Shown in pieces: positions 5,851 through 64,000 of a stretch of 64,000 bases of DNA (position 1 is its first letter; each line of letters starts with the position of its first letter). The position numbers and the translations under genes were made by a program. The notes under the pieces are model-generated. The model was given only the letters and a program-made list of their open reading frames with translations. It ran no database searches and had not been told where the DNA came from. The DNA is from Guillardia theta CCMP2712 (taxonomy: Eukaryota > Protista > Cryptophyta): contig NW_005434672.1 of assembly GCF_000315625.1 (NCBI RefSeq), forward strand, positions 539,503-603,502, read 5' to 3'.

Positions 5851-6949
5851 GAGAGAGGATGTTCGATATCGAGAGGAACCTGATCTGTGAACGAAGGAGA
5901 GAAATTAAATGGAGAGACAGGAAGGATGAACAAAGAGTGAGAAAACGCGGGAAGAGAGGGATATATATCAACACAAGATTGCTAGGTTTATGTACAGGCA
6001 GGAGGGATGGACTAGTCGAGGTCTGACCGGTGCTGATTCCAGGTCAGGAAGGGGTGGGGGGAGAGGAGGGGGTGCTGCATGAAGAAGTTTGATGACTCAA
6101 CACGAAAGACATAGGTATAGGCAGAAGGGGGAGCGGGGAGGGAAGGGAGGGGGTGGGGTGGGGGTGGGGTAGGCGGATGTGAGGATGGAAGGAGATAGGA
6201 GCAGGAGTAGGCGGAAGAGATGAGAAAAACTCAGGGGGGTAAAGTAGTGGTAGGGGTAGTAAAGGAGGGGGTTATGATTGTATGATTTTATGGGAGTATA
6301 AGGGGTAGGGGATTTAAGACTGAAGAAGGAATAGCAGGGGGTGGGGTGACTCCTTTCTGTGTGATTTCTGGTAGGCAACAGCACCCTGTCACGTTTCAGC
6401 TGAAGATCCGAGGAGGGTGGGGTACTTACAATAGGTTTAGAGGGGTCCGTCAAGATTTGTGAGGGTGGGGTGGACTTGGGGGTCGAAAAGTAATAGATTT
6501 TTTACGTGGGAGACTGGGAACATAACCGGTTGAATCTAGGGGTAGGGGTGAAAATACGAGGGGTAATGCTCTTTTATGAGGGGTAGGGGGTATATGCTGG
6601 ATGTGATTGTGTCAGGGTAGGTACCATGATCAGGGGTACTTCGACACTCGGGCCGCTCTTTTACTGTATATTTGCTGGGTGGTGAACAAGTGTACGCAAG
6701 TAAATCAATGTGACTAAGTTGAAGGAGGGGTCATGAGCGAAAAATTGGGGTACGTGGTGTTAAAAGGGTTAAGAATGAGGGTGGGGTGGTGGCTACGGTT
6801 GATGGAGTGTTTGATATTATTGCAACGTTCCAGCGGCTGACCGCAAGAGAGCCTACGGGACCACCCACCCTCCACTTTCACCGGATGACCGTGGTATACC
6901 AAGGGGTGGTCAGACACCGGGAAGGCAAATTGAACGGAGGAACTTCCGA

Positions 6950-60300: not shown

Positions 60301-60880
60301 TTCAGTCACCTCTACCCTAGTTTGCTGACCAAGGGGGTAGGGGGTGGATGTTGGGCTATCGGCCTAGTGGATGTCAGGGGTAGCTGATGGGGGGAAGGAG
60401 GGGTTAGGTGAGGGTCAGCCACTTTCGTATCCCCGGCCCCACCACCCTCAGACTTAGCGACCCACCACCCCCACCCCCTGATTCTATAAATTCTTTCCTT
60501 AGTTTGATAGGGTGCATTACCCACCCCTACCCCCTAAAGCAGTATTTGTTCAAACTGGCGTGTAGATAGCACCTGAATCCCAAGCCGCAGCACCGTCACC
60601 GCATGCCACTGCTGTGAACGATTCTTGTTAGGGCACGGATGCACAAATCATCATGTACATGCGTCCTTTCTTCATCATGATCAGGATAACATGCGTCCTT
60701 TCTTCATCGTCATTATGTTCATCACCATCACCACCATTATCTTCAGCACTATTACCACCTTCACAACCGCCACCATCATGAACATTCTTCCATCGATCTT
60801 GCACACCGAGATTATTCGTTCTCACTGATTTCTGACACGGTTGCAACTGCAAGGTATAAGCAGCATTGGACTCCAAACAG

Positions 60881-63833
60881 ATGCATCTAGGGATGACATC
60901 CCTCCTGCGCTCGAGCCTTTTCTTCCTCTTGGTGGTAATCACCAAAGTCTCCGTGGGTAGCTCTGATAGCACCCACCCTCCTCCTTCCTTGCTCTCTCAA
61001 AGTGTCCTTCGAGGTGGATCCCAGGTAGAATCCCTGGGCCCCAAGGGGGGTGTGAGGCTGCCGAGAAGGCAGGGGTATGCCTGTCATACAGCGCGGCCGG
61101 ACGTTTGTTACAACGAAGAGTTTGAGGAGGACGGGGATTCGAAGATGGGAATCCCTACCAGACAGTACAGGGAGTGCCTGCAACCCGGAAGCGACCCGGC
61201 GACAGTCGCAGGAGAAGCCTCCTACAATGATGATGAAGTGAACCCTCCCCCGCACAGGACAGAGCCCCCGCAGAGCGCTAAACCTGTGGAGTTCGGACAC
61301 GTGTGCGGGAATCTGAAGAAGATGCTGATATCAGGAGGGAACCAAGCGCACATTCGGAAAGAGCTCAAGGAGATGTTTTGCACCATCTTGGCCTCCAGTC
61401 CTGACGACATGACCGCACTCTTGTGCTTTCTTAGAGATCAGATCTCTTCGCCGACACTGGCTGGTATCGAACTGATTCCCTCCAGCATCATCGTCAAGGC
61501 GCTGGCTGAGTCTTGTGGCAAGACCTTCGACGGCGTGCGAGATTGTATCGCCCAGGCGAGCCCTCCTCTCCTCCCCTGTTAACCCCTCCCCTCCTCTCCT
61601 CCCTTCTCCTCCCCTCTCCTCCCCTCTACACACGTCAATGCGACGGATTATCTGCCCGACACTTGGATAATATTTTTTCAGCATAAGAATAATAATGAGA
61701 TCTGTAAATCTGGGGAAGAACTGTACACAATTTGATTGAAAAGGTCACATGTGCGCTGGGCCACTTACTTAGTTTTGTGGCCTCGCTCAGTTCCACTCTC
61801 AATAATCACGTTCAGACATGATGATTTCTTGTCTCACACGAGATTATTCCGATCACTACTTATTAGTACACAGAATGAATCTACCACCTGCACTGCAACA
61901 CTACACTGCTTCCATCTATGAATNNNNNNNNNNNNNNNNNNNNNNNNNNNNNNNNNNNNNNNNNNNNNNNNNNNNNNNNNNNNNNNNNNNNNNNNNNNNN
62001 NNNNNNNNNNNNNNNNNNNNNNNNNNNNNNNNNNNNNNNNNNNNNNNNNNNNNNNNNNNNNNNNNNNNNNNNNNNNNNNNNNNNNNNNNNNNNNNNNNNN
62101 NNNNNNNNNNNNNNNNNNNNNNNNNNNNNNNNNNNNNNNNNNNNNNNNNNNNNNNNNNNNNNNNNNNNNNNNNNNNNNNNNNNNNNNNNNNNNNNNNNNN
62201 NNNNNNNNNNNNNNNNNNNNNNNNNNNNNNNNNNNNNNNNNNNNNNNNNNNNNNNNNNNNNNNNNNNNNNNNNNNNNNNNNNNNNNNNNNNNNNNNNNNN
62301 NNNNNNNNNNNNNNNNNNNNNNNNNNNNNNNNNNNNNNNNNNNNNNNNNNNNNNNNNNNNNNNNNNNNNNNNNNNNNNNNNNNNNNNNNNNNNNNNNNNN
62401 NNNNNNNNNNNNNNNNNNNNNNNNNNNNNNNNNNNNNNNNNNNNNNNNNNNNNNNNNNNNNNNNNNNNNNNNNNNNNNNNNNNNNNNNNNNNNNNNNNNN
62501 NNNNNNNNNNNNNNNNNNNNNNNNNNNNNNNNNNNNNNNNNNNNNNNNNNNNNNNNNNNNNNNNNNNNNNNNNNNNNNNNNNNNNNNNNNNNNNNNNNNN
62601 NNNNNNNNNNNNNNNNNNNNNNNNNNNNNNNNNNNNNNNNNNNNNNNNNNNNNNNNNNNNNNNNNNNNNNNNNNNNNNNNNNNNNNNNNNNNNNNNNNNN
62701 NNNNNNNNNNNNNNNNNNNNNNNNNNNNNNNNNNNNNNNNNNNNNNNNNNNNNNNNNNNNNNGCTGCTCCAGACCTCCGGATGGTGAGTAGCACCAGCAA
62801 TAGGGAGGATCTTCAACCTGCTGATGACCTGCATACCTGTCCTTTTCGATCCTCCCTCTTCCCCCCCTCCCTCCCCTCCTCCCCTCCCTCTCCTCCCTCC
62901 TCCCCCTCCCTCCTCCCTCCCCTCCTCCTCCTTCCCCTCACGAGCGTCTCTGATAAGATCGCCATCATGGTCTCCTCGATCAACCTCTCTGTTGACCTGA
63001 CGGAAGTGTGACCGTTCTTGTCAGGTCATTCCTGTCCTCTTGAAGCATGACATGGCAGACGTGCTCAGGTCCGAGGGGAGGGAGGACTGGAGGGGCTGGG
63101 GGAGAGCGGGAGAAGCTGAAGATGATGTGGAGGAGGAAAGGGGAGGACGGAGAGAAGGAGGAGGAGAATAGAGAGGAGAATAAAGAGAAGGAGGAAGAGG
63201 AGGAGAGTAGAGAGGAGGAGAGAGAGGAGGAGAGGAGAGGAGAGGAGGGAGAGGAGGGGAGTAGAGAAGAGGAGGAGAGTAGAGAAGGGGCAGAGGAGGA
63301 GAGTAGAGAACAGGAGGAATAGGTGGTGGTGGTCGGCGCTTACTAGACCGGCGTGCAGCGCTCTCAACGTGGAGGAGAAGCGACCGCGCATGCTGCGAGG
63401 AGCCAAGTGCCGCGCATTCGAAGCGCTGAGGGACTGGACGGAGCTGGATGTGGGTGCTGGAGGGAGGGAGGGAGGGAGGCGGGGAGGGGGGGAACTTCGA
63501 CCCCTGACGGGACTTGGCAGGAGACGGACTCGCTGCTGAACAGTCAGGAGGCTCAGCAGTCACGGGAGGAGGCGGTGGAAGTTGCCAACGAGAGGAGGAG
63601 AGCCGCTCTGCACCATGGGTTCTCTCCTACCCGCCTTGCGGACATCGAAAGGTGGGAACGAGGACCGCGCTCCTGGGTCCCTCCTCTGCCTACTCTCTCC
63701 CCCCACCCTCCTCCTCCTCCTCCTCTACCCTACCACATCTGTTCCCCAGCTCTCAATCTCAGCTCACTCCAGGTCTCTCTATGCTAAACATCTTGTCGAC
63801 GTCCCTTCTCGAGCATCGCGGATACGCAATGAG
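60881..63833 (+). CDS. DNA ligase I-like protein: signal peptide, DNA-binding domain and degenerate adenylation domain; spans the gap and probably continues past the window
   Basis: LKEMFCTILASSPDDMTALLCFLRDQISSP...IIVKALAESCGKT matches the ligase N-terminal domain. After the gap, APDLRM|VIPVLLKHD aligns with Lig1 VPDLDRIIPVLLEHG. Confidence 0.75.
61924..62762. other. Assembly gap (N run)
   Basis: About 839 consecutive N. Confidence 0.99.
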
Positions 63834-63864
63834 GTGCGACACTGGGCATGGAGAAGTCCTTTGA

Positions 63865-63895
<31 letters not shown>

Positions 63896-64000
63896 GAGGA
63901 GGAGGAGGAGGAGGGGAGCGCGATGACCGCCCTCGTCGTTCCTTTAGGTTGGAGGGGGGGGAGCACTAGGAAGATAAATAACATCTACTTATTGTTAATA

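Follow-up and report, generated by a model that had tools for sequence, protein, structure and literature searches.

A gap-broken nuclear locus of Guillardia theta that probably joins a DNA ligase I-type DNA-binding domain to an LSD1-type amine oxidase

Introduction

Does the locus at positions 60881-63833 of the window (the whole 64,000-nucleotide stretch of Guillardia theta DNA analyzed here, C2:539503-603502) encode a DNA ligase that has lost its catalytic lysine, or does its ligase-like domain belong to a different kind of protein? A sequence-only reading of the window had raised the first of these possibilities, describing a DNA ligase I homologue with a signal peptide, an LRGG leader and an alanine in place of the adenylated lysine. 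The locus and its relatives carry a ligase I-type DNA-binding domain and lack a ligase core, and at the G. theta locus exons for an LSD1-type amine oxidase follow colinearly on the same strand. It is likely that 60881-63833 is the 5' third of one large nuclear gene, broken by assembly gaps, that encodes in order a leader, a ligase I DNA-binding domain, a linker and an LSD1-type oxidase; we infer that these parts are carried on a single transcript in the G. theta genome. Our whole-genome searches covered 87.1 Mb in 669 contigs, and the exons of the locus were searched singly and by position.

Results

The public gene model for this locus, P0001, is a protein of 233 amino acids (60881-61582) that consists of exon 1 followed by eight codons of intron (ASPPLLPC) and a stop codon. 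The nearest named relative is a transcript fragment from Hanusia phi, P0002, which is 61% identical overall and approximately 85% identical in the domain part, the leader-proximal part of exon 1 being much less alike. A profile built from P0001 and P0002 was run against 1.84 billion representative proteins and found 13 further proteins at E <= 0.001, all of them from metagenome assemblies. Word searches with P0016 and L025 ORF2 likewise returned metagenome proteins only, and an Atlas search yielded only generic ligase N-terminal clusters. Members with complete N termini have a hydrophobic segment, a [LIVG]RGG[SA] motif 15-45 residues further on, a (D/E)GDS(L/K)MG.P motif, and then a domain that matches PF04675.

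One of these relatives, L025, is a 9.7 kb genomic contig with introns, on which four open reading frames (ORFs) lie colinearly on one strand. ORF1 encodes the leader and the ligase-type domain. In a single uninterrupted frame, the 666 amino acids of ORF2 run from the last helix of the domain through the linker into the N-terminal half of the oxidase, in the order last helix, ALNV..RGAKLRALER..AEEEAQAAREARYAALTFGLSALKLSRMETACLAPLLTSPAQTRRILLLRNE.., then GKVVVVGGGFSG..., ..VLHWHAANLEFALGAPL... The Pfam Amino_oxidase profile (PF01593) continues through the contig, with its positions 1-103, 220-287 and 285-427 falling colinearly on ORF2, ORF3 and ORF4. The order of the parts is identical in an independent contig, L029, which is 45-62% identical to L025 from the leader to the SWIRM-like part. 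The combination of a ligase I DNA-binding domain with an LSD1-type oxidase is found in at least three lineages, each with a leader of the endoplasmic reticulum (ER) type.

We compared the ORFs of L025 with C2:600000-609999 (the segment L009) by tblastn and observed colinear matches on the forward strand, including a match of exon 1 with L025 ORF1 at 4.9e-16. Immediately past the end of the window comes a run of 2,923 N (C2:603503-606425, L009 3504-6426). Past this second N run of the locus lie six oxidase exons, ILQWHHANLEFALGAPLANVS and IQRMGFGLLNKV among them, and the oxidase blocks on C2 come in the order ETCNLYNSDGKR.., LFNELLDSA.., ILQWHHANLEFALGAPLANVS, WWNFDDLCAYPGQHW.., DAVVVTVPLGVLK, IQRMGFGLLNK and VILEFPSSFW...FAYMFWP. 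A third run of approximately 100 N lies 4.9 kb further on (C2:608370-608470, L009 8371-8471). The oxidase exons are 56-83% identical to L025 in short conserved blocks. Over a comparable oxidase stretch they are 56-76% identical to L025, as against 34% for the nearest oxidase paralogue in the genome, an intron-free ORF of 591 amino acids (L028 1885-3660, C27:83884-85659) that has a complete, canonical PF01593 domain (277 bits), no Pfam SWIRM domain and no ligase-type domain. The part that is missing up to the first visible oxidase exon corresponds to residues 134-371 of L025 ORF2, an amount that fits the 2.9 kb gap.

The short exons, A to E, lie on the window side of that gap. When exons B to E were aligned with the family piece by piece, they followed one another along the last helix of the domain and the linker. 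Across all six frames of the window, the family profile finds its best domain match in exon D (profile positions 70-99, 9.5 bits). When each exon was scored against the family profile alongside 1,000 shuffles, the p values were 0.013, <=0.001, <=0.001 and 0.12 for exons B, C, D and E, respectively (Fisher 2.5e-6), exons C and D outscoring all 1,000 shuffles.

The oxidase itself is of the LSD1 type. Among solved structures, the L025 oxidase matches KDM1A at 1.3e-28 and KDM1B at 7e-19, and other amine oxidases at 1e-8 or weaker. Its sequence mgfgllnkvv aligns to MGFGNLNKVV of LSD1, which ends at residue 663, such that the lysine of LLNK falls on LSD1 position 661; the same LLNK is present in a G. 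theta exon (IQRMGFGLLNKV). Lys661 is the active-site lysine of human LSD1. The plant relatives of LSD1 and LSD2 are known as LDL and FLD. The FAD-binding GxGxxG start of the oxidase (FAD, flavin adenine dinucleotide) reads VVVVGGGFSG in L025, and L029 has the FAD-binding block adjacent to that start; the G. theta counterpart lies inside the second N run. Ahead of the oxidase is a stretch that we call SWIRM-like, which phmmer aligns, at only 5.3 bits, in matching register with the beginning of the SWIRM domain of LSD1.

The sequence-only description of the locus as a DNA ligase I homologue is borne out for the N-terminal DNA-binding domain, and for that domain only: there is neither a nucleotidyltransferase domain nor an oligonucleotide/oligosaccharide-binding (OB) domain. 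In the window, only the first approximately 90 residues of the DNA-binding domain and its last helix are visible. Compared with solved structures using phmmer, residues 157-224 of exon 1 find LIG1 in ten of the ten best matches, which are weak (E 0.25-1.8). The domain part of exon 1 also matches the genome's own ligase I loci by tblastn, at 2.7e-4 on C90 and 0.011 on C30, and the exon 1 region matches the domain of the relative P0016 at 3.5e-13. In the relatives the assignment is stronger: PF04675 scores above the Pfam cut-off, at 25-62 bits and with up to full coverage of the profile, and neither PF01068 nor PF04679 is found. The P0016 domain matches human LIG1 at E 1.7e-18, in an alignment that ends at the last helix of the domain (...DWRRVLPALVSHG versus ...DLDRIIPVLLEHG). 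An AlphaFold (AF2) model of the domain, made from 15 family sequences, has a predicted local distance difference test score (pLDDT) of 78.9, and its 32 best matches among solved structures are all LIG1, with template modeling (TM) scores of 0.65-0.78 and a best E of 2e-9. The P0016 domain gave a further match on C33 (1.5e-4, containing stop codons), which tblastn of that stretch failed to recover and which we discarded as compositional.

What the locus lacks is the ligase core. A genome search with PF01068 and PF04675, two of the ligase profiles that the sequence-only reading had proposed for a check, matches four loci other than 60881-63833, at C49:320476-321907, C30:169307-171277, C90:238213-240546 and C6:746365-748514. 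All four are genuine ATP-dependent DNA ligase loci, each with both profiles. Pfam searches of exon 1 and of three ORFs over 63353-63926 gave no meaningful match, and PF01068 was found neither at the locus nor in any relative scanned. Likewise, PF04679 (the OB fold) is absent from the complete Pfam scans made of L025 ORF2-4 and of the relatives; in its place comes an amine oxidase. With no nucleotidyltransferase domain and no OB domain, the protein cannot be a ligase, dead or alive.

These results bear directly on the alanine that had been placed at the adenylation lysine. The peptides on which that proposal drew are all present, the five short exons (A to E) splice in frame with GT-AG at all four introns, and GCC (Ala) can be read directly at 63584-63586 within EVANERRRAALH (63578-63613). 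It is the equation of this 12-mer with ligase motif I that fails. In a gap-free comparison the two share 4 of 12 identities, and with 4/12 taken as the threshold, 104 of the 87,070 12-mers of the window reach it. Among the 908 forward-frame 12-mers of 62763-64000, approximately 1.1 matches are expected at this level and exactly 1 is observed, so the similarity is at chance level. Exon D encodes a linker of a non-ligase family: EVANERRRAALH corresponds to QAAREARYAALT of the L025 linker, a correspondence that places the "catalytic" alanine, as judged from the alignment, at a variable linker position and not in an adenylation motif.

A degenerate full-length ligase I paralogue, with Lys changed to Ala in motif I and serving the periplastid compartment or nucleomorph as a dead clamp, is consequently an exceedingly improbable account of this locus. 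The DNA-binding domain is genuinely ligase I-like, the 12-mer sits approximately where motif I should come after that domain, and RPRML loosely resembles KPMLA. Against this, the family does not conserve the PML of RPRML, having ARRRAAG, SRQRASC and PRQRGTG instead. By phmmer, the relatives align with LIG1 no further than the last helix of the DNA-binding domain, and exon D aligns to a conserved linker that in L025 and L029 leads into the LSD1-type oxidase. Only some 240 residues separate the domain from the oxidase, and in L025 that stretch contains no KxDG. There is no adenylation domain in which a lysine could have become an alanine, and the K-to-A pseudoligase at this locus is a false lead.

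The visible parts of the gene all lie on the forward strand. An ORF from the ATG at 60881 opens with a hydrophobic, signal peptide-like leader, MHLGMTSLLRSSLFFLLVVITKVSVG (60881-60958), followed by VLRGG (61004-61018) and GDSKMG (61133-61150), one copy each of the two family-wide motifs. The first approximately 90 residues of the DNA-binding domain, KPVEFGHVCGNL...GVRDCIAQ, assigned by homology, occupy 61280-61555 and end exon 1. The likely donor is GC rather than GT (CAG followed by GCGAGC at 61556, where the homology ends). Comparison with relatives identifies 61556-61923 as intron-like sequence, which has no homology and is unique in the genome; it leads to assembly gap 1 (61924-62762), the AT-rich left flank of which is not a repeat. 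The two sides of gap 1 are not continuous coding sequence, in that homology stops at approximately 61555 and the right flank begins in the middle of an exon. By comparison with complete relatives (P0016 residues 279-423), gap 1 must contain the middle of the DNA-binding domain, amounting to approximately 100-145 codons, together with introns.

Exon A (62763-62783, AAPDLRM), which has lost its 5' end in gap 1, was assigned by visual inspection to (V)ADWRK in the family and to PDLDR in LIG1; it has only seven residues, and the aligner misplaced it. Exon B (63025-63068) encodes VIPVLLKHDMADVL (63025-63066), which is the last helix of the ligase-type domain by family alignment and falls on VLPALVSHGPH of the family, itself aligned to IIPVLLEHG of LIG1. 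The family-specific linker begins in exon C (63359-63449), (S)ALNVEEKRPRMLRGAKCRAFEALRDWTELD, placed by the family profile and by alignment; this exon includes RPRML, and the ALNV within its linker sequence is invariant across the family. Exon D (63521-63651), ETDS...SREEAVEVANERRRAALHHGFSPTRLADIE(R), includes the 12-mer discussed above and corresponds to AEEEAQAAREARYAALTFGLSALKLSRME of L025, where the linker aligned with it reads QAAREARYAALTFG... Exon E (63773-63833) encodes SLYAKHLVDVPSRASRIRNE (63774-63833), the start of the SWIRM-like stretch, for which the family has CLAPLLTSPAQTRRILLLRNE. The donors of exons A to E are GTGAGT (at 62784), GTCCGA, GTGGGT, GTGGGA and GTGCGA (at 63834), and the four introns between these exons have AG acceptors and preserve the reading frame throughout. 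Exon E reaches its donor without a stop codon; therefore the gene continues into the second N run.

Two features of the introns deserve separate mention. In G. theta, those at 62840-62950, 63080-63320 and 63860-63915 are full of purine- or pyrimidine-rich simple repeats of the GGAGGA/CCTCCT type, which match dozens of places in the genome at 74-83% identity and draw spurious matches from RNA contigs. In L025, the first intron of the homologue (6178-6272) is flanked by a 15-nucleotide direct repeat (ggcatcatctggcag ... ggcatcacctggcag) and also contains an internal duplicated 20-mer; it has the appearance of an introner-type insertion that duplicated its target site.

The N-terminal features that had been noted before are real: the hydrophobic, signal peptide-like leader and the LRGG motif are kept in all relatives whose N terminus is complete. 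Hydrophobicity in the leader peaks over the 11 residues 13-23, with a Kyte-Doolittle (KD) value of 2.68, and all family members checked have an equivalent hydrophobic segment. LRGG is the tail sequence of ubiquitin. We also noted that a more distant member, L032, has the exact ubiquitin-tail sequence LRLRGG 10 residues before its GDSLMG. In exon 1, the likely cleavage site falls between VSVG and SS and is followed by a Ser/Thr/Arg-rich stretch with no aromatic residue at the site. In cryptophytes, a protein is assigned to the nucleomorph or periplastid compartment when the transit-like peptide behind its signal peptide has no aromatic residue at +1, a rule that has been stated for nucleomorph H2A (PMC5443833). 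It is plausible, from the residues of the leader, that it routes the protein via the ER to the periplastid compartment or nucleomorph.

Discussion

A single gene that runs from the leader to the oxidase accounts for the order of parts described above, and several observations weigh against it. The assembly lacks the FAD-binding start, the greater part of the SWIRM-like region and, at the C terminus of the oxidase, approximately 115 residues; a whole-genome search for the C-terminal part matched only the C27 paralogue. A SWIRM domain (PF04433) was found neither by Pfam nor by a profile search of solved structures, and the SWIRM-like stretch gives an hhalign P of 0.068 in the LSD1 register and an AF2 model with a pLDDT of 38. 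L032, a marine metagenome contig of 69% GC whose protein P0020 (1199-2710) has the leader and a weak PF04675 domain, lacks an oxidase within 2.6 kb downstream, its next genes being on the opposite strand or encoding an acyltransferase; stand-alone versions of leader plus ligase-type domain may therefore exist. We sought RNA reads on 60800-64000 in four runs, including an approximately 6% sample of an RNA-seq run, and observed one read on exon 1, no splice joints and no transcript spanning the gaps. The H. phi transcript P0002 has the same exon 1 boundary and reads through the first intron. Finally, assignment of the protein to the nucleomorph would be weakened if the organisms behind the metagenome relatives have no nucleomorphs.

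The position of the junction within 2,923 N and the restriction of the public model P0001 to exon 1 could be taken to mean that there are two genes, one for a leader, ligase-type domain and linker ending in the second gap, and a separate LSD1-like gene starting there. L032, with its ligase-type module and no nearby oxidase, would be a precedent. We consider two genes unlikely. Exon E ends at a canonical donor and not at a stop codon, and exons C to E do not match L032 but match the linker of the L025 and L029 type, where a single ORF runs from the linker into the oxidase. A single gene also agrees with the strand, with the order and with how much sequence is missing (ORF2 residues 134-371). 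More improbable still is that the locus is silent or decaying, a pseudogene with exons that only seem intact. Such a pseudogene would be consistent with the single RNA read, with the absence of an RNA contig on the exons (the RNA contigs on 60800-64000 are low-complexity pieces only), with the non-GT donor of exon 1, with the retained first intron of the H. phi transcript and with the failure to find the C-terminal part of the oxidase in the assembly. It is at odds with five consecutive exons that remain in frame across four canonical GT-AG introns, and with the approximately 85% identity to H. phi in the domain part as against far less near the leader, which is the pattern of purifying selection. 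Also retained are the WH.ANLEFA motif and the lysine that aligns with LSD1 position 661. The lack of RNA evidence is itself weak, because run X1 holds 98% of the sampled exon 1 words while none of the X1 contigs was placed on exon 1.

The single, gap-broken gene would encode a protein that starts with an ER-type, signal peptide-like leader and the conserved LRGG and GDSxMG motifs, continues with a complete DNA ligase I-type DNA-binding domain devoid of the ligase catalytic core, passes through a family-specific linker and a SWIRM-like stretch, and ends in an LSD1/KDM1-type FAD amine oxidase encoded by the exons beyond the 2.9 kb N run just past the window. We take the oxidase to be the active part because it keeps WH.ANLEFA and a lysine at the place of LSD1 position 661. 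The protein is probably an active flavin amine oxidase with a borrowed ligase DNA-binding domain, most likely a working demethylase of methyl-lysine on histone tails, and its helical ligase domain would serve as a built-in DNA tether. With a Ser/Thr/Arg-rich stretch behind it and no aromatic residue where cleavage is likely, the leader would most likely direct the protein via the ER into the periplastid compartment and the nucleomorph. A fuller version of this scheme, in which a host-encoded LSD1-type demethylase is imported via the ER into the periplastid compartment, is held on DNA by the ligase I domain and acts on nucleomorph chromatin, with (R)LRGG as a processing site during import (for example, for a deubiquitinase of the import machinery derived from ER-associated degradation, ERAD), is speculative and rather doubtful as a whole.

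If that scheme were true, it would give a first point of access to the way in which histone marks of the enslaved nucleus are edited by the host. More simply, provided that the leader functions like those of other cryptophyte proteins, the gene would be a candidate for a host-encoded editor of nucleomorph chromatin. In a narrow literature search we found no description of an architecture that combines a ligase I DNA-binding domain with an LSD1-type oxidase, and none of a nucleomorph-directed demethylase. It is a new domain architecture within a known enzyme family, and it provides a natural case in which the "clamp" domain of a ligase has been reused as a stand-alone DNA-binding module. On the single-gene interpretation, the public model P0001 would be the tip of a far larger gene that is masked by three assembly gaps.

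Comparison with eukaryotic DNA ligase I (human LIG1, 1X9N, 8B8T) shows where the resemblance begins and ends. The family shares with it the N-terminal DNA-binding domain, which PF04675 covers in full in relatives, and the match of its fold model to human LIG1 (TM 0.74-0.78) includes the final helix (IPVLLxH). Unlike DNA ligase I, the family has neither the nucleotidyltransferase domain with motifs I-V nor the OB domain. With regard to targeting, the putative signal peptide would follow the pattern of nucleomorph H2A (PMC5443833), in which an N-terminal signal peptide precedes a transit peptide-like stretch without an aromatic residue at +1; the leader differs in its conserved LRGG.

The closest known systems are LSD1/KDM1A and LSD2/KDM1B (2V1D, 4GU0). 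The family has in common with these the FAD amine-oxidase domain, for which KDM1A and then KDM1B are the best solved matches, the WH.ANLEFA motif, and the lysine of MGFGLLNK aligned with LSD1 position 661; a stretch before the oxidase aligns weakly in the register of the LSD1 SWIRM start. The family oxidase also has an insertion where KDM1A has its Tower domain, although no Tower-like coiled coil was recognized in it. In contrast to LSD1 and LSD2, the family has approximately 480 extra N-terminal residues, made up of the leader, the LRGG and GDSxMG motifs and the ligase I DNA-binding domain, and its SWIRM is not detectable with Pfam. An ER-type leader would also be unexpected on a chromatin enzyme of the host nucleus. 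A ligase domain used as a DNA tether would resemble the additional modules with which LSD1-CoREST and LSD2 bind nucleosomes or DNA.

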